DNA of 64,000 nucleotides from Neoechinorhynchus agilis (Eukaryota > Animalia > Acanthocephala), in assembly GCA_051530055.1 (NCBI GenBank), contig CM121342.1, positions 12,725,480 to 12,789,479 on the forward strand, given 5' to 3'. Of this stretch, positions 8,232 to 61,889 are shown one piece after another (position 1 is the first letter of the stretch; every line of letters begins with the position of its first letter). Both the position numbers and the translations under genes were made by a program. A model generated the notes under the pieces. It did not search any database. It was given only the letters and a program-made list of their open reading frames with translations, and was not told the origin of the DNA.

Positions 8232-9246
8232 TAGCAATAATAACAAAGGATAATCGCGAACCAATATTTTTGTGCCAAAACATTAGTCTCACCGTGCAGC
8301 GGTGAGTGAATTAAATGTTTTGTGGATATAAATTTTATAAAATTTAATAAAATTTGTTTTAACAGGGAAACAATTACCTTATTAAAAAGTATAAGAAGTG
8401 CACTAGGTTACTATGAATTTTGTTCGTTATAAGCTAGGCATCGCTTTTTTGGCCGGTGGCATCTAAATATCGAATAATATTTAATCTATCCGAAAGGCGT
8501 TCAGCTTATTTGTTCTCGCATTATTTATCTGATGGAGACAGTTAATTCAGATTGCCTTTTTAGAAGAAAAATAAAATAGTAAAACGTTTTTTAGATGTTT
8601 TCATTAGCTAATGAAAATCCATCAATCTAGATTTAGCGTCGTCTCTTAGGAACTGGAACGGTCGAAGCGGTGGATAAATACAATCACTTTCAAGCGAAAA
8701 AACGGTCGGTTGGGTCTTTTAGCGCCATACCACATAGGAGGTATCCCTGTGAATAAGTTTACAAACGAGCGAAAATTATAAAATACGCACCCATCAGAAG
8801 CAATCCAATGTCTGAGAACGTTCCAAGCCTAAATTGGATTCCTCTCCCATTCAGGAACACATGGATGAAGAAGGACAGCAATTAAAAACTGTATATGCAG
8901 AAAAAATTGTCTTCAAAAGTTTATCAAAAGAGAAATTAATTTAATTGGTAATTAATTGATAGTTTGATACTAATAAACAAACCGTGATAGCTATCGCGAA
9001 TCTGAAAACATTTTTGGATTCAACGAGTTGAGATGTACAAAATGCTCATATCAAATTTTAGCTCCGCTCCATCTCGGCGAATAAGTTTACAAACAAGCGA
9101 AAATTTACCTAATCAACGAAATTCTCGAGTTATATGCGTTCGTGATACTTCGTTCCAAACTGTGAGCCGCCTTGCTCAAACCTTGTTCTCTGGTTTCCCG
9201 AATTCGAAGTTTGAGAACTTAGTGGAGAAAAGCAGTAATTGACGCC
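8232..9246 (+). repeat. copy A of a 1-kb dispersed duplication (copy B 28110-29130)
   Basis: Direct line-by-line near-identity with a few indels; starts with a CRE 3' end (..QNISLTVQR*). Confidence 0.95.
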
Positions 9247-9560
9247 GCACAGAAAATAAGAGTGGGAACCTTGAATGTTGGTACTATAAACCGTAAATGT
9301 ATGGAGGTAATAATAACACGTTTAATTTGTTAATGTACAAAGAAGAGGATCCATGTACCTTTGGGTCCTCAATGTACCTTTGGGTATGATGAATCGAAGA
9401 AAATTTTTCTGTTTCCAGGAATTAAGATAGAAGATAGTGAAAGCGCGTTAATAACTTGACAGCTACAAGCTCAATTACAATGGATCATCGTTTTGTCGAA
9501 ACTTTATTGGAATAATCCTAAATTATAAATACACAGATGGAATCATCGAAGTCGACAGGG
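9247..9560 (+). mobile_element. RTE-type APE endonuclease N-terminal remnant
   Basis: KIRVGTLNVGTINRK, then broken FQELR and SYKLNY motifs. Confidence 0.5.
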
Positions 9561-10183: not shown

Positions 10184-11794
10184 TTAAATAGTTTTAAAAC
10201 GTTCAGGGATATTCATTTGATAACAAAAGCGAAATAATCTAGAACCGACGAGTGTTCCAGCCAGTGCGAAGCATATTACGCTCGCAATCAACATCAGATT
10301 ACGCCAGCTCACAACGACGTCTTCTATGATCGTGGTATTTATTTCCAAACGAGCTTCACTTGTAGTACTATGCTTAGTCGTGCTTGACTTGAAAATCGAT
10401 GGGTTTTTCCACTTGTCCACCTCATTATTTACTAACTGAAAAAACTCTGGATCAGGTATACGACCGCCTGCCATTTTTGTTTGATTGGAGTGGTTGCGCC
10501 ACGTTTGAAGAAGATAAACACAAAATCTTCTTTTGTTTAATTTATGCCATGATGAAAAATTTCCCAAATTATAAATTTCTGCGTTGAGGAGTTTTTCAAT
10601 ATGATTCCAGTTCTTATTTTGATTTTGGGTTTTCAATAATATCGTATGATTAATCAACAATGAAAGGTGCTCTAGTTCTTCTTTAAAACTGTCATTAATT
10701 TCTATGGAACTTACTTTAGCGAAACCTCGACTTTCGTCTACCTTTGGTAATTGCACTTCAGCAAGTGAAATCGAAGTAGCTTGTATAGTTTCTGCCGTCG
10801 TTGCCCCTTCTGTTGTCCAAGTGGTCGTTTGTGTCGCAGCTATGCCGGCCGTTGTTTTCCTGGTTTTTCTGTAGATTGTTTTTCCTCCTGTTGTTACATT
10901 TTTCACTGATTTAGTTATGTTGGTGTCATATGCACTGGCGATTGTTGAAGTTGTGGCCCTGGTAGGTACCATGGTGCTCATCATCGAAAATGCTGTCGAA
11001 ACAGTACGGAATGTTGCGTTCGCCATTTTAATTGTTTTTGACACAGGATAGAATAAAGTGTTTAAGAAGACTGTTGCATTCAAAACAAACGGAGTTGTTT
11101 TCTCGATAATTGCTGCACCTAAAGTCGTTGTGATTAATGTAGTTGGATTGGTGAGCATTGTTTCTGTTGTAGGCAGCGCTGTCGTTGTTGTGGTAGTTGT
11201 TGGATTATACGTAGGCGCTTCTGGAGTACCTTTTTCAAGCAACAAAGGCCGAAAACCTACGATCGAGTTTGCAGTATTGCTGGGACAATTTTTAGGTTTG
11301 CAGTACGTTTCGTAACAGCGTAATTCTGTCCCATGCTCATCAGAAAACATTTTCCATTTCTCTCCGTTTGTGAACAACAGCAATAATCGAAAAGCGTCGC
11401 TCTCACTCTGGTGATATCGATTGAGCTCCTCGTAGGCCATTCTTAGTGCATCCCTTACATTAGCCCCCTCTGGGTACCATTGCCGGCGAAATTGCGTAAC
11501 TTGTGCAACACCGAGCAGATTTCTATACCCTTTGTTTTCATTTTCTGCGGCACCGACCATGATATCAGCGTCTAGATCGTATCTAATCAACGAAATTCTC
11601 GAGTTATATGCGTTCGTGATACTTCGTTCCAAACGGTGGATAAACTCAATAACTTCCCAACGATAAAGTCTGTCGGTGGAGTCTTCTACCACAATGACCA
11701 CGTCAAGTTTTATTCTTGCACATAGGTTCAACATATCATCTGCAATTGCAGTTCTTACAAAAGATAATACTAAAATGATCTTCACCAAATTCAT
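10184..11794 (-). CDS. intronless type I membrane protein: signal peptide, vWA-like domain, Thr-rich mucin-like stalk, C-terminal TM
   Basis: MNLVKIILVLSFVRTAIA; LDVVIVVEDS (degenerate MIDAS), ISLIRY, LLLLFTNG; poly-Thr tracts; hydrophobic LMLIASVICFALAGTLVG. Confidence 0.8.
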   Translation of the reverse strand: MNLVKIILVLSFVRTAIADDMLNLCARIKLDVVIVVEDSTDRLYRWEVIEFIHRLERSITNAYNSRISLIRYDLDADIMVGAAENENKGYRNLLGVAQVTQFRRQWYPEGANVRDALRMAYEELNRYHQSESDAFRLLLLFTNGEKWKMFSDEHGTELRCYETYCKPKNCPSNTANSIVGFRPLLLEKGTPEAPTYNPTTTTTTTALPTTETMLTNPTTLITTTLGAAIIEKTTPFVLNATVFLNTLFYPVSKTIKMANATFRTVSTAFSMMSTMVPTRATTSTIASAYDTNITKSVKNVTTGGKTIYRKTRKTTAGIAATQTTTWTTEGATTAETIQATSISLAEVQLPKVDESRGFAKVSSIEINDSFKEELEHLSLLINHTILLKTQNQNKNWNHIEKLLNAEIYNLGNFSSWHKLNKRRFCVYLLQTWRNHSNQTKMAGGRIPDPEFFQLVNNEVDKWKNPSIFKSSTTKHSTTSEARLEINTTIIEDVVVSWRNLMLIASVICFALAGTLVGSRLFRFCYQMNIPERFKTI

Positions 11795-13714
11795 TTTTGT
11801 TGACAATTTACTTGGGAGCATTGTATGCAACGTATCTATGGTAACTAACTTTCCAAATCATTTATGCTACTGCGCAAAATTATTGCCGAACCCTTGACAA
11901 ATAATTAATGTTAAACACCGTTTGGTCTAGTTTTGGATTAAGAGACGTGAATGAGTATACAAATGCATTGACAATAGTCATTAAAAAATTGTATTTAGTC
12001 GAGAAATTAACCCACGTGATACATTTCTGTCGCGATTATTTATCTATTTTGTTTATTCTTCTAATAAGGAGAGCGAGAAAAAGTAAACATCGAAGTTGTA
12101 CTTATGAATCACAAATTTGTATTTCTTTAAGTAAAGAAGTGTTTATTGTTTTCCCTGTTTCTTGGATAAAATACTTAAAATTTTCAATCATTTAAAAATG
12201 CCGTTTACTAGCGTTGTAAAAAACAGTAGTTTACACATTGTATATCATTTATCATGTTACCAAGTAAAAGCACTTCGATGTACCTTTATTTTGTGTAAAT
12301 CTTGAATTATTTGAAGATTTTGTAAAATTAAAATGTATTGAGATCATGAATAATTTTTGACAGCCTTAAAATTTTATACCTTGGAAAATACGCGTCATAG
12401 TATCGTTTGTAGCAATCTACATATTGTTCAAGATTCGGTTATGCATCCTCATTAATCTGTACTACTAATTTTATTCCGCTATTTTTTATGTTTTAAAGTT
12501 TCTGTAGTTCAAATTGTACCGAATTTAATTATAATAATAAAACGTTTCAATAATGAACAAAAAATAGGACACATGTAACATTGGGTCATCGCCTACATTC
12601 CAATTCGTAAACACTCGAGTTTTGATAGGGTAAATGAATGTATCGGTTGATTTTGTAGTGGTTTACGGGGATAGTTTGTGAAGTTTCATCTTTCTTAGCC
12701 TCATTTTGGGTCATGATATCCGAGAAGATTGGGCAGTATAAAAAAGAAGAGGAGCTTCCATATCGAGCTGAATAGCTTCCGCTAATATATCCTGAACTGT
12801 GCTCATCGCTTCAATTAACGAACCCTTTAAAGTTGCAGTAACTCGTAAGTGCAACATCAACAAGATTGGAATACTTGACCGTCTCATTCAATGTTCATTG
12901 ATTTTCATTTAAATGCATTCCTAATTATAAATTAGCACCTGGCGAAAAGATAACGACGAAAAACGCCCAAGCGATCAAAATGCTAATTGCTGACTTCACT
13001 CGCGCGAAAAAGTGAATAATGTCAGCTTACTTGTTTTTGAAGCCACGAGAAAATATTTAGAGCGGTAGATGTGGTGATCACCGGATGCAGGTTAGATAAA
13101 TAACTCGTTTCATTTTAGATTTATGGTCATGTGCAGCTCGAGTTCTTGTAAAATGACTTAAAAACCTCTTTCCAAATGTGTGCGCTCTGAGAATACGCGC
13201 ACTCACTAAAGTACTAGAAGATTTGATTTCAAATTAATTCTTTTTTAAAAACTTTTGTCGTATGTCTCTGAATTTAATCGTAAAATTTTGTTTTAGAAAG
13301 TACTACCAAATTTGTTGAAATTTCTCAAGTTTTCCTCATTTTTTGGCGATCATTTGAAGAATGATAAAGAGAAATGATTTCTGGATTTGGAGATGTGGTG
13401 ATCACCGGATGCAACATATTGAATGGAATGATCTCTCGTGGGACCCCTAACATCATCAGTCATCTAAAAAGACTTTCCCGAACCTCGAGGACGATGATCC
13501 TGCTTGCACGAACCCTAAAATACAACTAAAATCTTTTACGATGGTACAGCCACGTCTCTAACTTTTTGCTTTGTTGTTTATTGGAAATGATTTCATCGTA
13601 ATGACGCAAAAATCTCAAAGCTCTTCGAAAGAATCATAATCGATTTGGTGCTTCTTGAAACCGATATTCTCTGTGTCCAGTATTATTGGAGGACAGATTC
13701 GGCCTTTTTTGTTC

Positions 13715-16700
13715 TTTTCGATTGGCTCGTTGGTGATATTACATCAAAATATACACTATGATATCGCGAGATCTTTTTGTATTGTTACTCGCCTTCGATT
13801 GGCTCGTTGGCGTGATTAAATCAAAATATCCACTATGATATCGCGAGATCTTTTTTAATATATTATGTTTTTTTATTAAATGTCGTTTTTTATTTGATCG
13901 TATTCATAGCGGTCATTTCTATAGTTCGAATCTAAACTTTCTGTACAAACAGATGCGGATTTTGTAACTCGCCTTCGATTGGCTCGTTGGTGCGATTACA
14001 TCAAAATATCAACTATGATATCGCGAGATCTTCTTTTCGATTTAATGTTTAGACATTATTTTTTATCCAAATCATAACAGCTATTAGTACGATGAACTAA
14101 AGTTGAAAATTGATTTGACCCTCTTGTTTAGGTCATTTCCATAGTTCGAATCTCAACATTCTGCACAAACAGATCCGGATTTTGCTACTCGCCTTCGATT
14201 AGATCGTTGGTTATATTACATCAAAATATCCACTTTGATATCGCGAGATCTTTTTTGCCGGTTTAATGTTACTTCTTAGACGTTTTTATCTGAATCATAA
14301 GACCTGTTAATACGCTAAAGTAAAATTTAAAATTAATTTAAATGTCGTTTTTTATATGATCATATTCATAGCGGTCATTTCTATAGTTCGAATCTAAACT
14401 TTCTGTACAAACAGATGCGGATTTTGTAACTCGCCTTCGATTGGCTCGTTGGTGCGATTACATCAAAATATCCACTATGATATCGCGAGATCTTTTTTCG
14501 GTTTAATGTTACTTCTTAGACATTATTTTTTATCCAAATACTTAACAGCTGTTAATACGAATAACCAAAGTTTAAAATTAATTTATATTTCGTTTTTTGG
14601 TCTGATCATATTCATAACAGTCATTTCTATAGTTCGAATCTATGCTTTCTGCACAAACAGATCCGGATTCTGTTACTCGCCTTCGATTGGCTCGTTGATG
14701 TGATTAAATCAAAATATCCACTGTGATATCGCGAGAACCTTTTTGTCGGTTTAATGTTACTTCTTAGACATTATTTTTTATCCAAATCATAACAGCTGTT
14801 AATACGATGAACTAAACTTTAAAATTCATTTGACTCTCTTTTTTTATGTGATCACATTCATAGAAATCATTTCCATAGTTGGAATCTAAACTTTCAGCAC
14901 AAACAGATCCGGATTTCGGTTCTCGCCTTTGATTGGCTCGTTGGTGTGATTACATCAAAATATCCACTATGATATCGCGAGATCTTTTTGTCGGTTAAAT
15001 GTTACTTGGACATTTTTTAGTCCGAATCATAACAGCTATTAATACGATGAACTAAAGTTGAAAATTGATTTGACTCTCTTTTTTTAGGTCATTTCCATAG
15101 TTCGAATCTCAACATTCTGAACAAACAGATCCGGATTTTGCTACTCGATCCAGTTGGCTAGTTGGGGCGATTACATCAAAATATCCACTATGATATCGCG
15201 AGATCTTCTTTTCGATTCAATGTTTAGACTTTTTTATCCAAATCATAACAGCTGTTAATACGATGAACTAAAGTTTAAAATTGATTTGACTCTTTTTTTA
15301 TGTGATCACATTCATAGCAGTCATTTCTATAGTTCGAATCTAAACGTTCTGCACAAACAGATCCGGATTTTGTTACTCGCCTTTGATTGACTCGTTGGTG
15401 TGATTACATCAAAATATCCACTATGATATCGCGAGATATTTTTTGTCGGTTTAATGTTACTTCTTAGACATTATTTTTTTTATCCAAATCATAACAGCTG
15501 TTAATACGATGAACTAAAGTTTAAAATTCATTTGACTCTCTTTTTTTATGTGATCCCATTCATAGCAGTCATTTCTATAGTTGGAATCTAAACTTTCAGC
15601 ACAAACAGATCCGGATTTTGTTACTCGCCTTTGATTGGCTCGTTGGTGTGATTATATCAAAATATCCACTATGGTATCGCGAGATCTTTTTTGTCGGTTT
15701 TATGTTACTTCTTAGACATTATTTTTTATCCAAATCATAACAGCTATTAATATGATGAACTAAAGTTGAAAATTGATTCTACTCTCTTTTTTACGTCATT
15801 TCCATAGTACGAATCTCAACATTCTGCACAAACAGATCCGGATTTTGTTACTCGCCCTCGATTGGCTCGTTGGTGCGATTACATCAAAATATCCACTATG
15901 ATATCGCGAGATCTTCTTTTCGATCTAATGTTTAGACATTATTTTTTATCTAAATCATAACAGCTGTTAATACGATGAACTAAAGTTTAAAATTGATTTG
16001 ACTCTCTCTTTTTATGTGATCACATTCATAGCAGTCATTTCTATAGTTTGAATCTAAACGTTCTGCACAAATAGATCCGGATTTTGTTACTCGCCTTTGA
16101 TTGGCTCGTTGGTGTGATTACATCAACATATCCACTATGATATCGCGAGATCTTTTTTGTCGGTTTAATGTTACTTCTTAGACATTATTTTTTTTATCCA
16201 AATCATAACAGCTGTTAATACGATGAACTAAAGTTTAAAATTCATTTGACTCTCTTTTTTTATGTGATCCCATTCATAGCAGTCATTTCTATAGTTGGAA
16301 TCTAAACTTTCAGCACAAACAGATCCGGATTTTGTTACTCGCCTTTGATTGGCTCGTTGGTGTGATTACATCGAAATATCCACTATGGTATCGCGAGATC
16401 TTTTTTGTCGGTTTAATGTTACTTCTTAGACCTTATTTTTTATCCAAATCATAACAGCTGTTAATACGAATATCCAAAGTTTAAAATTAATTTACATTTC
16501 GTTTTTTGATCTGATCATATTTATAGCAGTCATTTCTATAGTTCGAATCTATGCTTTCTGCACAAACAGAACCGGATTTTGGTTCTCGCCTTTGATTGGC
16601 TCGTTGGTATGATTACATCAAAATATCCACTATGATATCGCGAGATCTTTTTTGTCGGTTTAATGTTACTTCTTAGACATTATTTTTTCATCCAAATCAT

Positions 16701-17995
16701 AACACCTGTTAATACGATGAACTAAAGTTTAAAATTCATGTGGCTCTCTTTTTTTAGGTGATTTCATTCATAGCAGTCATTTCTATAATTGGAGTCTAAA
16801 CTTTCAGCACAAACAGATCCGGATTTTGGTTCTCGCCTTTGATTGGCTCGTTGGTGTGATTACATCAAAATATCCACTATGATATCGCGAGAATTTTTTT
16901 GTCGGTTTAATGTCACTTCTTAGACATTATTTTTTATCCAAATCATAACAGCTATTAGTACGATGAACTAAAGTTGAAAATTGATTTGACTCTTGTTTAG
17001 GTCATTTCCATAGTTCGAATCTCAACATTCTGCACAAACAGATCCGGATTTTGCTACTCGCCTTTGATTAGATCGTTGGTTATATTACATCAAAATATCC
17101 ACTTTGATATCGCGAGATCTTTTTTGCCGGTTTAATGTTACTTCTTAGACGATTTTATCCGAATCATAAGACCTGTTAATACGCTAAAGTAAAATTTAAA
17201 ATTAATTTAAATGTAGTTTTTTATATGATCATATTCATAGCGGTCATTTCTATAGTTCGAATGTCAACATTCTGCACAAACTGATCCGGATTTTGCTACT
17301 CGCCTTCGATTGGCTCGTTGATTATATTTCATCAAAATATCCTTTATGATATCGCGAGATCTTCTTTTCGGTTTGATGTTATTTAAACATTATTTTTTAT
17401 CCAAATCATAAGAGCTGTTAATACGATGAACTAAAGTTTAAAATTGATTTAAATCTCTTTTTTTTATCTGATCACATTCATAGCAGTCATTTCTTTAGTT
17501 CGAATCTAAACTTTCAGTACAAACAGATCCGGATTTTGTTACTCGCCTTCGATTGGCTCGTTGTTGTGATTAGATCAAAATATCAACTATGATATCGCGA
17601 GATCTTCTTTTCGATTTAATGTTTAGACATTATTTTTTATCCAAATCACAACAGCTGTTAATACGATGAACTAAAGTTTAAAATTGATTTGACTCTCTTT
17701 TTTTATGTGATCACATTCAAAGCAGTCATTTCTATGGTTCGAATCTAAACGTTCTGCACAAACAGATCCGGATTTTGTTACTCGCCTTCGATTGGCTCGA
17801 TGAAATCGCGAGATCTTTTTTTGTCGGTTTAATGTTACTTGGACATTTTTTTAGTCTAAATCATAACAGCTGTTAATGCGATGAACTAAAGTTTAAAATT
17901 GATTTAAATCTCTTTTTGATCTGATCATATTCATAGCGGTCATTTCTATAGTTTAAATCTCAACTTTCTGCACAAACAGATCGGGAATTCTGTTA
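13715..17995. repeat. tandem satellite, about 18 units of about 213-248 bp, with higher-order structure
   Basis: Recurrent ACAAACAGATCCGGATTTTG, GATTGGCTCGTTGG and GATATCGCGAGATC anchors at roughly 220-248 bp spacing. Confidence 0.97.
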
Positions 17996-20077: not shown

Positions 20078-20200
20078 AGCAGAAAAATTAAGAGTTTATT
20101 GATTCCAATATTTCGGCACAACCTTGTGCGATGCTGCCTTCATAAAGGCACAGGATTGTACCGAAATATTGGAATCAATAAATTTTCAATTTTTACGCCA
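20078..20200. mobile_element. MITE-like hairpin, family 1
   Basis: Inverted arms AAAAATTAAGAGTTTATTGATTCCAATATTTCGGCACAA / TTGTACCGAAATATTGGAATCAATAAATTTTCAATTTTT; related to 36848 and 55052. Confidence 0.6.
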
Positions 20201-20253
20201 TCAGCAAGCATGAAAAATTCAATCTTCAAACACTGATAATATCGCATTCTTTT

Positions 20254-20448
20254 GGGTGGCTCAGCCGGTAGTCTTTTTATAGATATGTTTTATTTTTTTC
20301 CATACACGGCCGAATGGACACACCGTCCATCGATTTCGATCTGGGAAGCGCTGGTCTGCGCTCAATGCCCCATCGGTGCACTGTGTGTCCATTCGGCCGT
20401 GTATGGAACAATAAATATCTATCAAAGAGACTACCAGCTGAGCCACTC
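20254..20448. repeat. 195-bp imperfect inverted repeat (about 70-bp arms)
   Basis: GTGGCTCAGCCGGTAGTC..CCATACACGGCCGAATGGACACAC mirrored by GTGTGTCCATTCGGCCGTGTATGG..GACTACCAGCTGAGCCAC. Confidence 0.85.
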
Positions 20449-20518
20449 ATGAGACTGCTATAATCGGAAAGCTTATCCAAGCTGAAGTGGCGAAGTTTGT
20501 ACATTCCGTAGTTATGCT

Positions 20519-23201: not shown

Positions 23202-26200
23202 GGGGTGCTGATGCTTCGGTGGAATGTAACTACGATGAGCTGATCAAAATCATGAGAGGACTCTTTGTATCAGAGACACCGGAGTTGGTATGCAGGTACA
23301 AATTCTATAACACCAAAAATGAAAACGGGGCAGTCCTACACAGACTGAATCAATTACCTGCGGGGAGCCTCTAAAGGATGTAGTTTATGAATTGACTGCG
23401 GCCGCCATTCAAATTCGTGATGTCGTAGTGCTTAATGCCCCTCACAATGAGATAAGAAGGAGAGCTCTACTAGAACACAATTTATCTTTGGATGGTTTGG
23501 TGAAGATAATGCAAACCTTCGAATCGACTAACAGCGCTTTGGATGTTTTACGTCCAGTTGATCGCTCATCGAATCTGTTCGAAGCACACGCTATAAAAAC
23601 AAGTACATCCGAATCTTGAAATGTGCAACGCTCCAAGGATAGGAGGGTCGACGGTTGGCCAAGAAGACCCCGATGTACGAATTGTGGTAAATGGCAACGT
23701 CGCGACTTTGAGAATTGTTCTGCAAAAGACGAAAGGTGTTTCAAGTGTAAACGCAAGGGTCATTTTGCGCGTTGTTGTGGCCGACAAGTACACAAGTTGG
23801 ATGTGAGGGATGAGGACGAAGATATCACTGGAGAAGGCGATGATTGGAAAGAGATTCGCAGCATCAAAGCATTGGATGGCGTCAGAATAGCTTAAATATC
23901 CCCAATGAAAATGGAATTTGATTCGGGTGCCGTAGTCAGTGTGATTTTGAAGGAGATTTGGTCAAAAATTGGTGCTCCGAAGCTGACAAGTGCTAAAACG
24001 ATACGAGCATTTGGCGGAGGGAAATTCAATACTCTGGGTCGTTGCACCGTCGATGTGGATTATAAGAATCAAAGCAGACGATTGGAAGCCGTAGTAGTCG
24101 ATGCAGCAGAAAGGCCGTTGTTTGGTCTGGATTGGATATTGAGCTTAGGAATAACTATCCCTGCAAAAGTCGTGAAGGTCAATGTTGTTCGCGGGATGGA
24201 AGCAACACACAGGGTATCAAGGACTTCGTAGCGTCGTTGGTAGTGTCAGTCGAATCGAAGCCTATATAATGGAGTGCTCGCAGGATACCCTTCGCATTAC
24301 AAGAATCGGCCGAAGCAGAGCTAAGCAGATTAGTTAATGACGGGGTTCTTGTTCCGGTCGATAGCCTAAAAGAGAAAATCACATGGGCCACGCCTATAGT
24401 ATTGGTCAGAAAGGCAAACGGGAACCTTCGAATTTGCGGAGATTTTCGGGTCACGATCAACAGGTTTCTGAATGTCGATTCATTGCAAATTCCAACATTC
24501 GAACAAATGATGAACCGAGTTGCGGGTGTCGAAAAATACAGCATCATTGATCTAAAAGATGCTTACTTTCAAATTCCAGTGGATAAGGATACTAGTCGAT
24601 TGCTCACTATTGCGACTCCGTGGGGATATTACCGCTACCAACGTCTGCCGCTCGGTATCTTAGCAACGCCGGTAATCTTTCAAAGATTCATAAATAAGAT
24701 TCTGGACGGTCTCGAAGGAGTAAGTGCATATCTCGATGATATTATTGTTACAGCACCATCGGATGTTATTCATGTGCAGAGATTGATACAAGTGTTTGAG
24801 AGACTGAACGCCACCCGAGTCAAAATAACACCATCCAAATGCAAGTCCTTGCAGGACGAAGTAAGCTTCCTGGGATATAAGCTGACCAGAAATAGAATGT
24901 CACCAGAGGAGGAAAAGACACGTGTTTTGGTGAACGCAACAGCGCCCACGAATGTTAAAGATCTCCGCTCGTTCCTAGGACTGGCGAATTACCACGCTCG
25001 ATTCATACCACATTTTCAAGCGATTTGTTCGAAGTTGGACGAATTGACAAGAGTTGACACGAAATGGGCCGGGAACTCCGAGCATCAAAGGGCATTCAAT
25101 GAGATCAAGGAAGCGCTAAAAAGGGCAACAAATATCATGGCTTATGATAGTCGTTTACCTATTACACTCGCATGTGACGCTAGTGATTCCGGGTTAGCGG
25201 CAGTGTTATTTCATGTGGTCAATGAAAAGGGAGACATGGTGCCCATGTCTTTTGCGTCACGAGTATTACGAGATGCAGAAAAACACTATGCGACGATTGG
25301 AAAGAAAGCGCTGGCACTGGTTTATGGTTGCCAGATTTTTCGCAATTGCATTTATGGAAGATCCTTTAAGCTGCTAAGTGATCATAAGCCACTCAACTTT
25401 ATTTTCGGCGAGAAACGAAACTTAGCTAAATTGACTAATAGTAGACTGGTCCGATGGGCTCTCCAACCTTCTGAATATGATTATACAATCGAGTATATTC
25501 CAGGAAATAGCAATAATTATGCTGACATCTTATCGCGGATCCCATAGAAATCAAACGAATATTCACCAGATAAGGAGTGGGAAACCATGGATGTGAAGAA
25601 CATACAGGAAGAGAAATGCTCGGTAGCAGGCTTAACAACGCAGTCACTTAGAAGTGAGACTTAGAAGGATGGCCAATTGCAACGTATAAAGAGATATATG
25701 TTGTCGGGTTGGCCGCGTGGAACCATTAACCGGGAGGATAAGACTTTCGAGATCCGCAAAGACGAATTAACTCTGGAGAATGGAATGCTTATGTGGTTAG
25801 AACGGATCGTCGTACCGTATAATCTCAGAAAAGCCTTTTTGCGGTGAAACAGCAAGCAAAGCCATCGCCCGTTACCATTGTTGGTGGCCCAGAATCGAAG
25901 AGGATATAAAGGAGTTTATCTCTAACCGTGGTCAATGTCAGTCACATCGACCAAGAGAACCAGAACAACCATTGTTCCTTTGGGAACACCCACGAGAACC
26001 TTGGGGCCGAATTCATATAGATCTGGCGGGTCCAATACACAACAGGATGTTTCTAGTGATCGTGGACGCTGGTACAAAGTGGCCCGAGGTTTTCGTCAAA
26101 GAAAGGTTCAACACGAATGACGTAATCAAATGCTTGAGAGAAACGTTCAGTCGATAAGGCGTCCCATATCGCTTAGTGTCTGACAACGGTCCGCAATTCG

Positions 26201-26279: not shown

Positions 26280-28185
26280 CAACGAGTTGATCCGCTGCGA
26301 TTTCGATAGGAAACGCTTTACCCAAGGTGATTGATCGGTTATTGAGGGGAGACCTTGGTACGATTCTAAAACAGTTCTTCTTACATGCATCCCTGCATCC
26401 CTGTGCGGTATTTCAAAAAAGGAGAATTCGTCCGATTACGATAAGCTGTACCTTGCAAAGATTATCCGCAAAAATCATATGCAAAAGGATCACACAGAAA
26501 GTTGGCCTGGTACTTCGCCCCATACAACTCGGTTGTTATACATCATGTGGATCAGAAGCGATCGTGCATGCCCTGAGGAATCTCACCGAGTTATCCCCCC
26601 ACCAAAAAGCTGTATTTGACTTCAGAAACATGCTTTTAAACAGAATCTCAGATCACCTTCCGGAAGCTCTTCCATATTCCAACACAGCTTATGGCTCGAA
26701 AACCCATTAATTCTAGGAGAATAACCTGAATTGGTTTCAATCCGATGTACAACCGGGAGATCCTCTGGGCCCGATCGGATTTTCAATTGCGATATACCCG
26801 CTGACATCACTCAGATCGAAATTCAAAGAGTGGTATTTAGATGACGCTATTCTTGGAGACAAGCCGGAGATTGTATTAAAGGACCTGAAGAAAATTTCGG
26901 AAACGATTTCAGCGTTTGGTTGGGAGCGCAACTTCTCGAAGTTTGACCTGCTGTCAATTAACGTGGAGGAGGTGAACTGGACCAACATACTTCACGACTT
27001 TACCTCCGTCGCACCAAGCTTGGGGCCGATTCAGTTATATCAGCTTAGTTTGTTGGGTTCATGTGTACTAGGGCAGAACGTTCCAATGGATACCGAAGGC
27101 TCGCTGCCCAGTCTGGAGCTGCTATGTGAAAGGGCATCAAAGCTAAAAGCCCACGAGGCAGTGTTTCTCATCAAAAATTACCTCTACATACCGAAGCTTC
27201 TCTACAAGCTCAGAATCACTCTAACCTTCAACCATCAGATCGACTTGGCTAAGCTCGACAACCTCGTACGTGACAAACTTGAAAGCATTATGAAGGCAAA
27301 CAACCTCGCCCGCATCTTTCGCTGGTTCTGGCATTAGACGTACGAGTGACCTTGCCTTACCCTCCTTCCTTGCGTCAATATGCGCGAGTCATGAACGCTT
27401 GAAAAAGTTTTCGATGAGGTTAGTGAAAGGCATCTCAAAGCGGCCCTATCGAAATGGTCGTCACTATCGGATTGGATGATCCTCCAGGAAACTGCGCCAA
27501 ACAGCAATCTTGGGACTCACCGCTCGTTCATCAGGTTTACAACTCTTTAATGGACCTGATGGATGAGATGTCTCGAATTCGATTGATGGCTAATTCGACC
27601 AAAGAATTGGGATCATGGCTCGAAGCTTTGCCCAATGAACGCTTGGGAACATTACTAGATGACGAGAAATTGCGCATCTCATTTTGCCTCAGGTTCGGAT
27701 TGAATATTTGCATCATCGCGCACCAATGCCGTTGTGGCTCACATGTAGACGAAGCTGGCACGCATAGACTCTGTTGCAGGCGCTCGGCAGAGAGGTTCCC
27801 GATACACTCGGCACTCAACGACATAATCAGCAGAGTTTTGTCCCGCATTAACAATTCCATCGTCCTCGAGCCAAGCAATCTAGGACGCCTCGATTAAAAA
27901 CGCCTGGGCGGAGTGACCGTCTTCCCCTTGAGCCGCAGCAGCTATCTTATGTGTTATTGGCCAGGAGCAACTTCTAGGTTGCGAAGAAAGGCGCCGGCAA
28001 AGTCGCCACTGCTGCGGAGCGAAGGAAAATTGCCAAATACAGCTACCTCGCTCCGTTAGGCTTCAAAACCTACGGGTCGCTGCGCTGACCAAGGAAATAG
28101 GTCTGCGATTAGCAATAATAACAAAGGATTATCGCGAACCAATATTTTTGTGCCAAAACATTAGTCTCACCGTGCAGCGGTGAGT
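26280..28185 (+). mobile_element. CRE-like non-LTR retrotransposon (RT, zinc finger, REL), decayed
   Basis: RPITISCTLQRL, QPGDPLGP, WYLDDA, CRCG..H..CC, terminal FLCQNISLTVQR. Confidence 0.85.
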
Positions 28186-29130
28186 GAATTAAGTGTTTTG
28201 TGAATATAAATTTTACAAAAAATTTGATAAAATTAATTTTAACAAGGAAAAAATTATCTTATTAAAAAGTATAAGAAGTGCACTAGGCTACTATGAATTT
28301 TATTCGTTCTGTGGCATCTAAATATCGAATAATATTTAATCTATCCGAAAAGCGTTCAGCTTATTTGTTCTCGCATTATTTACCTGATGGATACAGTTAA
28401 TTCAGATTGCCTTTTTAGAAGAAAAATAAAATAGAAAAATGTTTTTTTAGATGTTTCCATTAGCTAATGAAAATCCATCTATGAATACTTGAATGTCGTT
28501 TCAAAAATCTAGATTTAGCGCCTTCTCTTAGGAATTGGAACGGTCGAAGCGGTAGATAAATACAATCACTTTCAAGCGAAAAAGACGGTCGGTTGAGTCT
28601 TTTAGCGCCATACCACGTAGGAGGTACCCCTGTGAATAAGTTTACAAACAAGCGAAAATTATAAAATACGCACCCATCAGAAACAATCCAATGTCTGAGA
28701 ACGTTCCGAGCCTAAATTGGATTCCTCTCCCATTCGGGGACACATGGACGAAAACGGACAGCAATTAAAAACTGTATATGCAGAAAAAAATTGTCTTCAA
28801 AAGTTTATCAAAAGAGAAAGTAATTTAATTGGCAATTAATTGATAGTTTGATACTAATAAACAAACCGTGACAGCTATCGCGAATCTGAAAACATTTTTG
28901 GATTCAACGAGTTGAGATGTACAAAATGCTCATATCAAATTTTAGCTCCGCTCCATCTCGGCGAATAAGTTTACAAACAAGCGAAAATTTACCTAATCAA
29001 CGAAATTCTCGAGTTATATGCGTTCGTGATACTTCGTTCCAAACTGTGAGCCGCCTTGCTCAAACCTTGTTCTCCGGTTTCCCGAATTCGAAGTTTGAGA
29101 ACTTAGTGGAGAAAAGCAGTAATTGACGCC
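28110..29130 (+). repeat. copy B of the 1-kb dispersed duplication
   Basis: Matches 8232-9246. Confidence 0.95.
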
Positions 29131-29520
29131 ACCCGTTGTTAGACAGCTTCCATTCTTTGCAATTCTTCAACAGTGGAATGGCTAGTTCAATCACCTCTTC
29201 AACTGGAACCTTCGTGAACAACGATATGACATCCGCAGATACCATTTTGCAGGAGTCATTGATATTCACTTTTTTCAGTCGATCAATTAGAACCCCTAAT
29301 GAAACAGCATGGATGGACGGGGGGAAGGAATCGTTTCAGAAGACCGGATAGAAACGTGAGCAGCTATGATCGGCGGCCGTGCACTTATGGGAGATTTGTG
29401 TACTTTCGCTAACATATACATTTTGGGAGTCGGTATGGATGGATCCAATTGTGGTGGTGCTTATAAAGATTCCATTTCAATTTTGCTGATTCAAAAGCAT
29501 CCAAAGTGTCATAACGTTTA
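29083..29520 (-). mobile_element. Penelope-like element RT fragment
   Basis: KVHKSP..RP, MVSADVISLFTKVPVEEVI, FSNFEF. Confidence 0.8.
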
Positions 29521-29539
29521 GCTATCCTTGCAGAAGCCT

Positions 29540-29985
29540 AGACGTCCACTCGTCACACTCAAAATGGGCACAACTCAGCGGTATTTAACAGAAAAGGGAG
29601 AACCTTAGATGGCATGTTCCTACCCAGATGGGTTGACGAGGTCTCCGGGTGTGTGTACAGGATACTCTGTAACGATTGTGACCAATCATTTATTGGACAA
29701 ACCAATAACATCCGAAGAAAGTTGACCGAACACAGACCGGCCATCAGCAAGTTGACCGATCTCAACTCAGCATTAGTTCATCACGTTAAAGAAAACAAAC
29801 ATCGAATTGATCTTGATGCCACTGAAATAATAGCGAGATGCGACAACAAACGTGACCGAATCACAATGGAGGCCATCATGATTGAACATGGCAACACGTT
29901 CACGCATAACAAAGCGGACTACACACTTAATTTACGTGTACCCTTTAACGCTGTGGTGAAAGGGCGGAAACTCAATCCGGACTAA
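29540..29985 (+). mobile_element. Penelope-like element GIY-YIG endonuclease C-terminus
   Basis: GCVYRILCNDCDQSFIGQT..EH..SALVHHV..H.ID..R..MEA..I. Confidence 0.88.
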
Positions 29986-30003
29986 TGTGCATGTGTGTTT
30001 CAG

Positions 30004-30050
30004 ATCACTGAAGAAGACCAACGCATTGGTCGAAAATTCTGATAAATAAA
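30004..30050 (+). ncRNA. minimal type-I hammerhead ribozyme at the Penelope 3' end plus AATAAA
   Basis: ATCA-CTGAAGA(30008-14)-A-GACCAA/TTGGTC-GAAA(30032-35)-AT-TC-TGAT; perfect stems I and II; AATT stem III; AATAAA 30045-50. Confidence 0.9.
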
Positions 30051-30109
30051 TTCTTAATTTCCTTTATTTCACCGTCCAAATTAACTTTTAAAATTTACAT
30101 GCTCAAAAG

Positions 30110-30530
30110 CTGCGCCATTTAGGAATCCCTTCGCCTGCTTTCTTTAAATTTTACTACAGGTCTTTCTTACCCTGTATCACGTACAATTATCCCGGATTTT
30201 TCAATCAGTCCAAATCACAAATCCGTCGCATTGTAACGTTTCATGGAAGAGCCTCTAAATTTTGCATAGTTTATTTTTTTCTCGCTCGACGAATACCGTT
30301 AAGATTTTAAACAAACAATCATAACCTCTCTCAACCCTACCACTACGATTTCTACCACATATCGCCCCCTTTTCACACGAGCACATCACTCGTAATCCCA
30401 ATTCCTTTAATCCTCCATCAACCTCGCACCTCCCTCTACCTCTGCTCCTTTTTCCATATTGCTCAATCTTCTTGGATATCAGCACCCGAAATGAACCGGA
30501 GTAAAGACCCGACGCCACAAACTCTCCTAC
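30110..30530 (+). mobile_element. 3' fragment of CR1/L2-like LINE
   Basis: 30163-30265 closely matches 49404-49505. Confidence 0.7.
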
Positions 30531-31181
30531 AAACAGTTGGTGGATTCAAATAAGGACAAATTTCTCCTACGAACAATAGCCACAAATTATTACCCAGCCA
30601 GACCCATCATCTACTCTAAAATAAACAACTACATTCAATGTCGCGAGTTCGGGTGTTCACGACGACCCAAATGTACATGGTTTCTCTTCTTCGGAAAAAT
30701 AAAACGCGTTTTTATCACTTATAAAATTAATCGAATCGTTTATGCAACAGTACGACCGTGAATACTAAGCCACTAGGCATTAAACAATTATCAATACAGA
30801 AAACGTGTACGCTAAAGTTATTGTAAGTAAATTTAGTGGATCATCAACAAATCAAGCTAAACAACATTTGTGTTTTTGATTGAGCGAGTCCTTGCACGTA
30901 GTAAAGAATTCAGACGAATAACACAAGAGTAACTAAAGGAGCCTTAAAGAGTATGGACTAATGATGAATGGCGAATCGTTAGTCCAGGGCACCCACTTAT
31001 TTAACTTTATAGAAAGCGCAAATATAGAAAGTACTCCATACGCAAAATTTTAACGCGGCACAAATAGCGCATCGCACCGCTGTATCACTGTAACATTTTT
31101 AAGTGCGTTTTAATTTCGTTGAATACGATTAGTGCGTGTTACTTGGGATATTTTCGCTTTTAGAAAACAACAAAAAGTTTC

Positions 31182-42167: not shown

Positions 42168-42297
42168 TTCTTGTGCATTTATCTACACCCGCATTTGAGT
42201 AATGAAGATAAAGATCTCTTCGAATCGTCCTTTTCTTGTGCATTTATCTACACCCGCATTTGAGTAATGAAGATAAAGATCTCTTCGAATCGTCCTT
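42168..42297. repeat. perfect 65-bp tandem duplication
   Basis: 42168-42232 equals 42233-42297. Confidence 0.95.
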
Positions 42298-44539: not shown

Positions 44540-47500
44540 TAAACACTTGCAATCAATGCCGAGGCCAAAGCACCCAACCACCAAGCTCGTCCCCTGTGAC
44601 ATGGACGATTGTCAGGTTAAAACCCAAATATTCGTCTCAAGTACCTGGATAGCAGGCAGGAAATTCATTTGCGGTTTCTGTGCAGCTGCCTTGCTCAAAC
44701 CTTGTTCTCCGGTTTCCTCCCTTCCCAATAAGTACTTAAACCCTAACCGCTAACAAACCCCCAAACCCCAACCCCTTCCATCTTTAGTTTCCCAACCCAA
44801 ATCTCCTCTTCCTCACTTTATTCTTCAAATACTTTCCACCCACCCTTTGCTGTCTCCGCCCTCCAAGACTCCTCTCCACACTCAAATTCGACTTCTCAAC
44901 AATCTTCTCCCTTCCTTAATTCCGTTCATATCATCCCGCATAACCCTCTTCCCTCGTCCCTGCACTCTAAGTCTCACTCTGCTCCACCATTAAAACCGAA
45001 CCCCCCATCCTCCTCGACCGCATCTTCCCCCACCTCCTCTCTAGCACCCCGTACTGCTAGAAAATACCAGAAACCCCTCCCATCCTTCTACGATTACGTT
45101 TCAACTTTAGCCCCATCAAAACCTACCACCTTCTCTCCTGTACCCCGATTTTCTAGTAAAAAGCACGCACCCCTACCATCCTTCAACGACTACATTAAGC
45201 ATCCCTCGCCTCGTAAATTAACTCCTCCTAAACCTCTCTCATCCTTGCTGCCTAAAACCACTATTCCGCACCCTACCAAATCTGGAAATTTTCGCTTTGC
45301 CCCTCAGAAGCGAAAAATACCTTGGACGCTCACACTACCTCACCTCTTAACACCTCCTTTTCAACTCCCAATCCCGCATGCACAGTTCCCACCCTTATGG
45401 TCCCTACACTCAAATCACACCTTAATACTGTGTCCACCCACGAATCCCTTACCACCGAACTACCCCACCGGTCAACTCCCAACCCTTCTCTCTCTACGCA
45501 GCTTCAACCCTCTCCGTCAGTGTCCATCCCTCATGTCCCTTCTAAACATCCCTTTCCAATAATCTTTTATTCTAACATCCGCAGTCTCCTCCCCAAACTG
45601 GATGAGCTCCATATAGTGGCCTCTTCTTGCAACGCCGACATCCTTGTAATTACAGAAACACGGCTCTCGCCCATAGCAAATTATCTGCCTTCCTTCCAAA
45701 CTTTCAAGCTTTTCACCTCACAAGGGATTTCCGAAACGGGGGAGGCATATCGATCTTCATCCGCACCTCTCTCTTACCATTGCTCTTCACCCTACCTTTT
45801 CATCTCCGACGATCTTGAATGGCTACACATCCAACTTCATTTCCCCCTCCGCAATGGCCAACATGAGATCTCTATCGCTGGCCTTTATCGCCCTCCTTCC
45901 TCAAACATCCCCAACACACTTCAACAAATAGACCGCGATTTGAACAAACTGCCGATCCCGCCCTCGCTCTCTCATATTTCCCAACTCGTTACTTTACCCA
46001 CACGCTTCTCCTCCCGCCTTGATAAAAATTTCTCAAACATCATGCAATACCCGTGCACTACCACGCCTCGTCTGACCATTGTTCCATCCTTCTCTCCCCC
46101 GCATCACCTCAAAAACGTACCTTTCCGACCCCTACGTTGTCTGGGATAAGCGTGACCATCATACCCACGCCTTTGCTGTGTGTGTCAATTCTCTTATCAC
46201 GTAAAACCGCTCTACCATCTTTGGTACCGACCCCTCGATTGCCGTGGGCTCTTTGTTAAATCTAATAGAATCTGCGATGAAGGCCTCCTTTCCTCGCAAA
46301 ACAATACGAATATCGAACCGCGACCCTCCATGGTTCTCGTCTTTTCTAAAACCCTTCAAATCCAGGTAACCAAAGCCTTCCGGTCAGGCAATCCCGCTTA
46401 CCCCTCCCTCCACTCCACACTGACCAAACGCATCCGAATAGCCCGCAAAGTATTCCTCTCATCTCGTCTCTCGTCTGTTCCCAATCGAAACTTTTGGCGT
46501 GAAATAAAAAATGTCACTGGTCTTGGTAGATCCACCCCCTTCGCATCTCTCCACAAATCTGATCTCTCGATCCTCAACACCACGAATAAAAACCTCTGTC
46601 CTCCCCAAACCTCCTCTCAATTGTTCCAACCTCCCTTCTCACTTTCGGACCCGTCCATTCATACATGCCCTTCCTTAGTTTACCCTCTCGAAATCCTAGA
46701 GATCCTTAAACGCCTACTCCGCCGTTCTTCCCCTAATTCGACTATCCCAAATTGGGCCATTCGTTTCATCATCCCGGAACTTATCGATCCTCTAACGCAC
46801 ATAACGAACCTTAGCTTTCTATTGGGCTCTTTCCCATCGTGTCTTAAGGAAGCCCGTGTCGTCCCCCTACCCAAAAACAATAAACGGATTTCCCCCACAT
46901 CCTTTCGTCTCATCTCTATCCTCTCACCTTTCTCTAAAATCTTAGAAAAATGTTTTAAAACCCGCCTACTTCCCTTCTTCCTCAAAAACATCTCCCCTTC
47001 CCAATTCGCTTTCCGTCCCAATTACTCTTGTTCTGATGCCCTCCTCTGCATCTACGATACGCTTGTGCGCAGCTTAGATTCCAATCCAGAATCAATCGTC
47101 CGTCTCGTGCAACTGGATATTTCCAGGGCGTTCGAGTCGGTCGATCACTTTCTTCTCTCCAATCATGTGCTTCTTTTGGCCTCCCAACCTGGCAACTCTC
47201 TTGGATTTCCTCTCCAACCGCAAACAATATATTCAATGTGGAACTTCTTGCTCCTCTTCTCTACCCATATTTAAAGGTATCCTCCAAGGCGCCGTACTTT
47301 CCCCTCTCCTTTTTGACATTTTTCTAAATGACCTTCATCCCCTCACTCCCCCTACCAAATATTTTCTCTATGCCGATGACCTCACAGTCATTATCATCGC
47401 ATCTCCCCCTCTCCCCCCTCTCCGCAACCATGGACGAGCTCAACCATCTCATTTCCTCGCTCTCCACCCTAAACCTCTCCCTAAATTTATCCAAATCTTT

Positions 47501-48289: not shown

Positions 48290-49740
48290 GCATGATTGCA
48301 TCCTTTACATTGCAAATTTTATGCTTATATCTCCGACCTATTTTTCTTGTTAAGAATGGGGAATCTATTAAGGCTCCGCCTGGGCGTCGTTGGATCTCGC
48401 TTCAAAACTCCTTAGTCACTATTTATGAGTGCGCTTTTCCTCACCGCCTCAATCTCTCCATCGAGGACATGAATCGCAACATTTTTATTAATGGTATAGC
48501 TGAATCCGATGTTGCAGACCTTTTCGCCTCTTATGTACACAGCCGCCACAAGATTCTTCGTATCGGTCAATTCCTTTTCCCGGCATTCACTCTACTATTC
48601 TTCATCCATTAACTGTTATGCGCATTCCATCCAAAAATCCCTTTAACCCGTGCCACGTCTCCTCAAAGTAACTTTTAATTCACCACTCGTAGCCTCTCTC
48701 ATTCTTAACAGGAGATACAAACTCCTCATTTCACAACTTTCTAATCGTATCTATCCACATAAAAACCTCCCTACGTTCGACAATACCCAAAAAACTCATT
48801 AAATTATCCAATAGTGACCCATCTTGGTTGAAACATCTTCAAAAGCAAGCATCTAAGGTCCATCGCAATAAATCTCATGCTTTTCTCCGTTTGCAAAAAG
48901 TACTATCCGACAAAATACTTCTTACCCTCAAAAACTTCCTTTCCTCCAAAATTCGTTCAGGTGGCAATTCAACATGGTGACGCGGAGCCCTGTTCCGATT
49001 TCGGTCTAAACTTGTGGCAGATCCACGGGCAAGCCTCTTATCTTCACAGTCTCAAAGAATACATTCATTGCCTGTCAAACTCCTCGATGATCGGCATATT
49101 CCTCACTAAAGGCGTATCTTAAACTGCCGTCATGTCACCACTTTACTTTAATATTTTCCGAAGCGACCTTGAATCTATATCCTCTCACTCTAAACTTTTC
49201 TTATATGCCGACGATCTCACCCTCATCGCTTCTCTAAATGCTTCGAAGTGATCCCCCACTCTCCCGCAGCCCCATATCCTATTATGATCTTTTAAATGAA
49301 ATCCGACGATTCACCTCCCTAAGAATCCTGGGTTTCCAATTTCAATCCAACTTGAAATGGGAATCGTCAAATGCAACACTTTTCCAAAATTCACTACAGC
49401 TTTATCTTACCCTGCATAACCTATGATTATCCCGTCTTTTCCAACTTGTCCAAATCGCAAATCCGTCGCATTGAAACGTTTCATGGAAGAGCCTCTAAAT
49501 TTTGCACGGCTAATTTTCCCCCTCTCACAGAATACCTTTATAAAATTCTCTCGAAACAATCAAAACGCATATCAACCCTACCATCACAATTTTTACCACA
49601 TTTTATTTCCCCTTTCAAATGATTACAACACTCGCAATCCCAATCTCTTTGATCTTTCCTCAATCTCGCAACTCCCTCTACCTCTGCTTATTTTTCCATA
49701 TTGCTCAATCTTCTCTTGTATCATAACCTGAAATGAACTT
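48290..49740 (+). pseudogene. second, more decayed CR1/L2-like LINE
   Basis: QG..LSPLYF, LYADDL, SLRILGFQFQSNLKW fragments. Confidence 0.7.
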
Positions 49741-50036
49741 GAGGAAAGATCGAAAACCCTACTTCACAAATTTCCGACAACACCTCTCAAAGAACCTAGT
49801 AAACGCTAATGGTCGTGCGTTCGCGAGGAACCAGAGGTAAATCGTTCCTCTACCTTGTTTCAATAAAAGGCGTTCAAAAAAAGCTTATGACTCATAATCC
49901 TAGTTTCCGTTTAATTCGCCTTCATTCCTTATCATTTAGACAAAGCAAGTATCGTTATAAGCAACGATTTCTTGTGGGGCATACATTCCAGAACTGTTTC
50001 CAACGATAAACGGGTAGTTTTTGATTAGCGTGGCAA

Positions 50037-61691: not shown

Positions 61692-61889
61692 TTATTGATA
61701 GTTGCAACCTTATTTACCTCCCCGATGACTGATTTATACGAATTTTCGTCAATCCCGGGCACCTGAGTTCTGCCCAAGCTACACTCACCATGTACTATTC
61801 TAGATGCCTGAAGAGGTCTGTATGCAGACGAAAATTCGTACAAATAAATCAGTCATCGGGGAGGTTAATAAGGTTGCAACTATCAATAA
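61692..61889. repeat. inverted repeat (about 60-bp arms) overlapping the hammerhead
   Basis: 61692-61750 is the reverse complement of 61827-61889 with one mismatch and a 4-nt gap. Confidence 0.9.
61804..61848 (+). ncRNA. minimal type-I hammerhead ribozyme plus AATAAA
   Basis: TGC-CTGAAGA(61808-14)-G-GTCTG/CAGAC-GAAA(61830-33)-AT-TC-GTA; stem I 3 bp including G.U; AATAAA 61843-48. Confidence 0.8.

Follow-up and report, generated by a model that had tools for sequence, protein, structure and literature searches.

A mosaic of seven short copied pieces, host exon fragments among them, at a broken Penelope-like element insertion

The locus and the pieces of the mosaic

The sequence analysed here, called the window throughout, is a stretch of 64,000 nt from chromosome C2 (C2:12725480-12789479) of a 46-Mb animal genome. 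The region is dense in transposable elements (TEs), with an LTR-type element, LINEs, Penelope-like elements (PLEs), MITEs and many small repeats. Its coding features include an intermediate-filament/lamin gene (4141-5842), an LTR-type reverse transcriptase (RT)/RNase H open reading frame (ORF; 24402-25547) and, on the minus strand, an uninterrupted vWA-like ORF of 548 aa (10184-11830), which opens with a signal-peptide-like sequence, has a vWA-like domain in its N-terminal part and a Thr-rich stretch, and carries a hydrophobic helix at its C-terminus. A Pfam search of this last ORF gave no match, while a language-model atlas places its residues 1-200 with VWA clusters (score 0.91), a placement that we take as a lead towards a putative domain. 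A satellite array lies 1.9 kb from the same gene (13693-17995; about 17 units with a period of about 248 bp and 82-86% identity). The window also contains a perfect 65-bp tandem duplication (42168-42232 = 42233-42297) and three palindromic fold-back stretches (20083-20462, 61692-61889) of 112-232 bp, whose arms are 75-79% identical; a palindrome related to them is found at L048:2358-2641.

Within this window, a stretch of 1.1 kb consists of seven short copies of other sequences that have been joined together. Read along the plus strand, piece 1 (28963-28989) is an exact copy of 27 bp located 329 bp upstream in direct orientation (28634-28660, plus strand); piece 2 (28990-29048) is 59 bp of the vWA-like exon, antisense to the frame of that gene; piece 3 (29044-29083) is 40 bp from the 5' region of a LINE in LINE sense; and piece 4 (29083-29430), hereafter X, is a 348-bp internal PLE fragment from the start of the RT, in antisense. 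These are followed by 85 bp of a FERM-PTP gene of another chromosome, C1, in the sense of the donor gene (piece 5, 29428-29512), by 58 bp from a second C1 locus (piece 6, 29515-29572, plus strand), and finally by the 507-bp 3' part of a PLE in sense orientation, including its 3' UTR (piece 7, 29579-30085, hereafter Y).

Three of the identities on the left side had been claimed in the original prediction, and all of them are exact: 28963-28989 equals 28634-28660 (27/27; E-value in a within-window BLAST 4e-9), 28993-29044 equals 11583-11634 (52/52; 5e-24) and 29053-29082 equals 44688-44717 (30/30; 7e-11). The 52-mer extends to the 59 bp of piece 2 with two mismatches, at positions 3 and 56, and its donor site within the vWA-like ORF (11580-11638, minus strand), 17 kb from the chain on the same chromosome, is the sole other locus of the 59-mer in the genome. 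The LINE identity of 30 bp likewise extends to 40 bp, with one gap of 1 nt. The homologous site in the LINE copy of the window (44678-44717, plus strand) is located some 140-180 nt from the start of the LINE, upstream of the ORFs for endonuclease and RT (Pfam RVT_1 at 46180-47274). Genome-wide, the scoring of all 18 candidates gave at least 15 LINE copies that match piece 3, and the window copy is not the best donor among them, since it agrees over 30 nt exactly, as against 35 nt in five copies outside the window (L025, L027, L028, L033 and L034), relative to which piece 3 is shorter by 1 nt.

The chain as originally described is present, but it goes further to the right, where two additional single-locus pieces had been missed. 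Piece 5 comes from C1:6321084-6321174 and matches this donor at 86 of 90 positions, with a slippage deletion of 6 nt; the donor is an open coding exon of 330 aa situated between FERM_C and the start of a tyrosine-phosphatase (PTP) domain. Piece 6 comes from C1:7275091-7275148 (55/58), a donor that is unique and apparently non-coding. All 14 genome-wide candidates for the C1 pieces were scored, and each piece was found to have one locus. The earlier belief that every donor lies within the window has to be given up, both for these two pieces and for the LINE piece, which has better donors elsewhere.

The contiguous chain occurs in only two places in the genome, both in the window and within 20 kb of each other, and each of the three host pieces (vWA-like, FERM-PTP and the 58-bp C1 piece) has one other locus genome-wide. 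A single contiguous TE consensus carrying all of these segments, which would have disposed of the templated-copy idea, is thereby excluded: no repeat family corresponds to the chain as a unit, the 59-mer occurs otherwise only in the gene, and the 85-mer and the 58-mer have one locus each. The core of the original claim, that short copies of unrelated donors stand end to end beside an antisense Penelope RT, agrees with what is found. One may still ask whether an ordinary TE graveyard or an assembly artefact could imitate such a chain through chance matches, fragments of composite repeats or mis-joined reads, given that the region is TE-dense and that PLE structures are known to confuse assemblies (PMC8557442). 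We consider this very improbable, because the host pieces are single-copy elsewhere and abut without intervening sequence, and the chain unit does not form a repeat family. Moreover, the junctions to the left of 29130 occur twice, in copies with a divergence of about 5% in the neighbouring sequence, and therefore are not assembly errors; those to the right of 29130 are present at a single locus and depend on the assembly there.

Penelope-like arms, breakpoints and flanks

The RT of Penelope-like elements is a sister of telomerase RT, and the replication mechanism of these elements is poorly understood. In the family described here, the layout comprises the RT N-terminus, the RT core with its YVDD motif, a GIY-YIG endonuclease and the 3' UTR. 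Copy L047 displays the succession that identifies an EN+ PLE, namely KVHK..RP, SADVISLFT and YVDD, followed by GIY-YIG, the latter scoring 23 bits in Pfam (cut-off 22.6). Pfam RVT_1 gave no match on the PLE; the N-terminal ORF falls with DUF8422/RVT_1 clusters in the atlas, a lead that would be compatible with a predicted RT. A search with Rfam for the hammerhead ribozyme motif of PLE terminal repeats gave no hit, either across the window at the gathering threshold or across 28800-30300 at E<=1, and minimal PLE hammerheads are often missed by such models. Positions within the element are given on a ruler, for which the natural copy L046 in element sense was used instead of a consensus; L046, used here as the longest copy, is itself 5'-truncated, and the family extends about 390 bp upstream of its 5' end (L047:5927-6337; L054:638-1025).

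Fragment X holds the KVHK..RP and SADVISLFT motifs and covers ruler positions 908 down to 536. Its identity as antisense PLE RT had been recognized before, whereas its border had been placed too far to the right: PLE sequence begins at 29083 and not at 29131, as 29083-29130 is contiguous PLE in other copies. The alignment of copies L010-L015 and L045-L049 with the window extends from 29083 to 29358-29430, and these copies also run on leftwards of 29083. That position was considered as a true PLE terminus and rejected, since other copies run across it; the window PLE is therefore broken inside the element, which leaves the left arm without an outward 3' end. Fragment Y, in turn, runs from ruler position 1526 to the canonical 3' end, terminating within 1 nt of the 3' terminus common to at least 10 other PLE copies, and carries the GIY-YIG endonuclease ORF (29614-29985; Pfam GIY-YIG 23 bits, cut-off 22.6).

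Copies of the family share a common 3' end and have differing 5' ends, as expected for target-primed reverse transcription. In the normal copies L053 and L058, two arms are arranged as head-to-head twins with their 3' ends outward, flanked by target-site duplications (TSDs) of 11 bp (11-12 bp in normal copies of the family), and a 22-nt optional tail is present on one arm only. The family thus displays head-to-head arms, an optional tail and a variable TSD, and the twin layout is the published insertion signature of PLEs (PMC8557442, PMC3846280, PMC11167929). The window PLE keeps the two-arm topology, with X antisense and Y sense; the two outward 3' ends and the TSD of a canonical twin are not found in it. 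The arms of L053, L058 and L045 are joined directly or with no more than 12 nt between them (0-12 nt). In the window copy, X and Y are separated by 148 bp of non-PLE sequence, and the 85- and 58-nt host pieces occupy exactly the arm-to-arm junction. Among about five head-to-head or 5' PLE junctions that were inspected, the window copy is the only one with host filler; a 253-bp insert in L059 was considered as a second case and proved to be an ordinary multicopy small element.

The 5' end of Y (ruler position 1526) is no more than 4 nt away from the independent junctions of L053 (1525) and L054 (1522), two breakpoints that belong to different subfamilies and involve different partners. On the L046 ruler, recurrent PLE breakpoints are seen at 1522-1526 (three copies), 860/861, 1683 (two copies) and 1935, the last of these being represented by more than 25 mini-copies of 107 bp; breakpoint sites are located at window 29579, L053:1500, L054:1497, L049:7281 and window 9246. 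Such recurrence suggests preferred drop-off sites or RNA ends.

All joins in the mosaic have either 0-5 nt of microhomology or 0-6 extra nucleotides. The left flank meets the 27-mer without microhomology (28962|28963), and the 27-mer is joined bluntly to the vWA piece. An imperfect 5-nt microhomology (C.GTG) links the vWA piece to the LINE piece, a 1-nt overlap (C) the LINE piece to X, and an overlap of 2-3 nt X to the PTP piece. Two extra nucleotides (AA, 29513-29514) stand between the PTP piece and the 58-mer, and six (29573-29578) between the 58-mer and Y. No piece of the mosaic crosses a splice junction.

No TSD was found around the mosaic. The 9-mer AAAATTTAC, which occurs at 28984 and again at 30090, was tried as a TSD and rejected, because on the right LINE-homologous bases separate it from the PLE end. 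The right flank (30086-30715, plus strand) is the 3' part of a LINE, from the C-terminal RT region, with homologous sequence at L048:8286-8917 and window 49386-49749. In the left flank, the LINE sequence that should precede the target was not found, and this flank shows no homology that would make it the upstream part of the right-flank LINE. It follows that a deletion accompanied or followed the event.

A partial second copy and its short open reading frame

Part of the locus is present twice: segment B (28110-29130, plus strand) has a partial duplicate, copy A, at 8232-9246 (plus strand). Segment B begins with the last 105 bp of a TE (27226-28214); next comes sequence that occurs only in A and B (28215-28687), from which the 27-mer of piece 1 was copied, then old diverged repeats (28688-28935), then 27 bp that match none of these classes, then the chain and 48 bp of X. 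With this composition, 28190-28975, where further patchwork had been looked for, can be dismissed as an extension of the mosaic. In copy A, the chain occupies 9079-9198 and the PLE 9199-9246 (48 bp). The original prediction had noted the same chain at 9079-9246, and it is indeed identical to 28963-29130 at 167 of 168 positions, the single difference being C/T at 29075. Copy A is the shorter of the two at both sides, as in B the TE continues left to 27226 and X continues to the right; because it covers only part of B on both sides, A is most readily seen as a derivative of a B-like locus, and a derivation of B from A would be less parsimonious. On the right, copy A stops at ruler position 861, no more than 1 nt away from an independent PLE 5' end (L049/L015, 860). 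The 60 bp to the right of copy A are unique in the genome, which eliminates a LINE endonuclease start at 9247 as a candidate feature, and a 64-bp repeat just beyond (9307-9371) has 331 first-look candidates genome-wide, often in inverted pairs or arrays. The suggestion that exon bits are being shuffled into mobile cassettes finds no support in these data: the mosaic is found only twice within 20 kb, the second copy is partial and the PLE parts are dead.

The divergence between the two copies is uneven. Up to 28872, 37 substitutions separate A from B over 732 aligned bp (about 5%), against a single difference (0.4%) over the last 258 bp (28873-29130 versus 8989-9246). Fisher's test of this step gives p = 2e-4 at the post-hoc split and p = 0.013 when the split is placed a priori at the start of the chain. 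The ratio of 1/258 to 37/732 points to the chain-bearing right end having been copied or converted much later than the rest, or, alternatively, to constraint on this end.

A 69-aa ORF spans the chain (28917-29126, plus strand; 9033-9242 in copy A). It is intact in both copies and lies inside the low-divergence stretch, and the sole A/B difference in it is synonymous. Its presence raises the alternative of a selected patchwork, in which the ORF would be a young chimeric gene kept in two copies, and the intact frame, the position within the 1/258 stretch (against 37/732 outside it) and the synonymous nature of the one change are what this alternative would call for. Yet a search of protein families gave no match for the ORF, the low divergence also spans 44 bp upstream of it, recent gene conversion or secondary copying explains the pattern equally well, and one synonymous change carries no statistical weight. 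We see hardly any likelihood that selection has maintained this ORF.

Origin of the mosaic and comparison with known systems

Nested insertion cannot lay single-copy snippets of 27-85 nt end to end, so that templated copying or the capture of fragments is needed, and the only reasonable explanations for the mosaic are those that invoke serial template use or capture. It belongs to a known kind, the chains of filler or templated insertions, of which it is an unusually rich case with seven pieces. The mosaic is a one-off scar at a broken PLE insertion that was later partly copied nearby; the product would be immobile, and it has no evident function.

Our preferred reading, to which we give about an even chance, is that a head-to-head PLE insertion went wrong and that short patches, probably RNA-templated, came to bridge its ends. 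The right arm Y would have been primed normally, given its canonical 3' terminus, and copied back only to the site where cDNAs of the PLE family repeatedly break off. The gap to the left flank would then have been filled, one short copy after another, from whatever nucleic acid was available, namely 58 and 85 nt of host sequence, 348 nt of PLE RNA placed in the opposite orientation, 40 nt of LINE, 59 nt of the vWA-like gene and 27 nt of local sequence. These patches could represent template jumps of a retroelement RT or short cDNA patches captured by end joining, and most likely they were templated by RNA. The make-up, order, orientation and donors of the pieces, the canonical 3' end, the recurrent breakpoint and the relation of A to B as a subset are read directly from the sequence. 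We infer a single event, RNA as the template and the kind of polymerase that acted. At a later time, part of the locus would have been copied to 8232-9246, and its right-hand 258 bp copied or converted much more recently.

Several observations argue for this sequence of steps. That Y ends at the canonical 3' terminus supports a PLE-linked origin, because a random repair donor would rarely end there, and the position of its other end near the L053 and L054 junctions points to a polymerase that leaves its template at a preferred site. The topology of X and Y is also that of a normal twin insertion of the family, with two host pieces exactly where the arms meet. Among the donors are two coding exons, a LINE and, twice, PLE sequence, which are all classes that are transcribed, and two of the donors are on another chromosome. 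The lengths of the pieces fit RNA-derived patches (PMC5110952); insertions made by Pol theta have a median length of 7 bp (PMC4912351), compared with 27-348 nt for the pieces seen here. In addition, host DNA capture and template jumps have both been proposed for rotifer PLEs (PMC3846280).

Other observations speak against an RNA-templated PLE insertion. The orientation of the pieces in the left arm is mixed, with the vWA piece antisense and the LINE piece sense, so that a single cDNA would need an antisense LINE transcript, and the 27-bp piece, a direct copy of sequence 329 bp upstream, has the look of cis DNA-templated repair. The 3' side of X is broken, no TSD was found, the target sequence upstream is missing, and there is no spliced piece. 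These points fit DNA-templated repair of a break equally well or better. Host filler, in addition, was seen only in the window among the roughly five junctions inspected. In a scenario of DNA-templated repair, no retrotransposition would be involved: a pre-existing PLE twin, which is a fragile inverted repeat, would have broken once or twice and been healed by SD-MMEJ, TMEJ or an MMBIR-like process that copied short genomic stretches from near and distant loci. The mixed orientations, the 27-bp cis copy, the location of the vWA donor only 17 kb away on the same chromosome, the microhomology at three junctions, and the lack of a TSD and of the upstream target are all in keeping with it, as is the fact that the PLE arms no longer overlap, which means that the palindrome has been eliminated. 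Microhomology-mediated deletions are also common in rotifer PLE copies (PMC3846280). The genome encodes Ku (two loci) and one family-A polymerase, although their presence does not discriminate between the explanations, and the polymerase could be Pol theta or Pol gamma. On the other hand, the tracts made by Pol theta are usually much shorter and come from the flanks of the break itself (PMC4912351), whereas four of the pieces here measure 40-85 nt and two come from another chromosome. Repair of this kind also needs two separate fillings less than 500 bp apart, or else a single event of great complexity, and the 5' end of Y falls at a breakpoint seen repeatedly among independent PLE copies, which is a better fit to a polymerase working on PLE RNA. 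Taken together, we regard DNA-templated repair as a possible but somewhat doubtful origin of the mosaic.

Among the systems described previously, the class 2 templated sequence insertions (TSI/TSIP; Onozawa and Aplan, PMC5110952), in which patches from distant transcribed regions are captured at double-strand breaks, show many of the same properties. Like these insertions, the mosaic contains pieces of tens to hundreds of bp from remote loci, some of them on another chromosome, has neither a TSD nor poly(A), shows microhomology or a few extra nucleotides at end-joining-type junctions, and places no constraint on orientation. Unlike them, it concatenates at least six patches, two of which derive from a retroelement, and is located at a PLE insertion instead of a plain break; its RNA origin, moreover, is one that we infer. 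A different parallel is offered by the bipartite and tripartite chimeric retrogenes that LINEs generate through template switching of their RT (Gogvadze et al., PMC2104539) and by L1 chimeras (bioRxiv 10.1101/2025.02.02.635956). In both the mosaic and the chimeric retrogenes (PMC2104539), the 3' part is a 5'-truncated retroelement with its own 3' terminus, cellular sequences are fused to its 5' side, and there are several switches per product. The mosaic differs in that its parts are not all in the same transcriptional orientation, in that its 5' parts are internal fragments of 27-85 nt from long ORFs or a LINE instead of full-length RNAs, in the lack of detectable flanking direct repeats, and in that the element is a PLE and not a LINE.

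The rotifer PLEs (Arkhipova et al. 2013, PMC3846280; Craig et al. 2021, PMC8557442) share with the present family an RT with a C-terminal GIY-YIG, inverted arms and an optional tail, and share with the mosaic microhomology-mediated 5' junctions, host sequence inside or beside the elements and proposed template jumps. Yet the captures described in rotifers are single spacers of 0.9-1.5 kb, or whole genes, between pLTRs, some of which have been mobilised, whereas the mosaic holds several snippets of 27-85 nt from different loci in one dead, non-mobile copy. Pol theta end joining and filler DNA (Kent et al. 2016, PMC4912351; SD-MMEJ, PMC2943611) likewise involve serial template switching, with templated tracts accompanied by a few untemplated nucleotides, and the 27-mer copied in cis from the flank resembles their products. 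The typical tracts in that case, however, are a few to about 15 nt long and come from the break's own ends, in contrast to the mostly 40-348 nt found here, and the 27-mer is the only piece with a flank donor.

As matters stand, the mosaic is one dead locus within the known range of filler and templated-insertion events. It shows that exon snippets from other chromosomes can enter the non-coding DNA of a very compact animal genome, and it records at least six successive template changes at a recurrent breakpoint, which offers a concrete starting point for finding out whether the RT of PLEs moves from one RNA to another in vivo. A more far-reaching proposal would be that there are fixed sites at which this RT habitually drops off its template in vivo to move on through cellular mRNAs, so that exon-snippet mosaics form regularly and the 69-aa ORF is a gene born in this way; were this true, PLE insertions would be a regular source of such mosaics in syndermatan genomes. 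We rate this proposal as improbable. As to where PLEs insert, two independent insertions (window 30086 and L048:8094-8286) lie in diverged copies of one LINE family, 69-76% identical to each other, at sites that are about 120 bp apart in LINE coordinates, and this may reflect a regional target preference.
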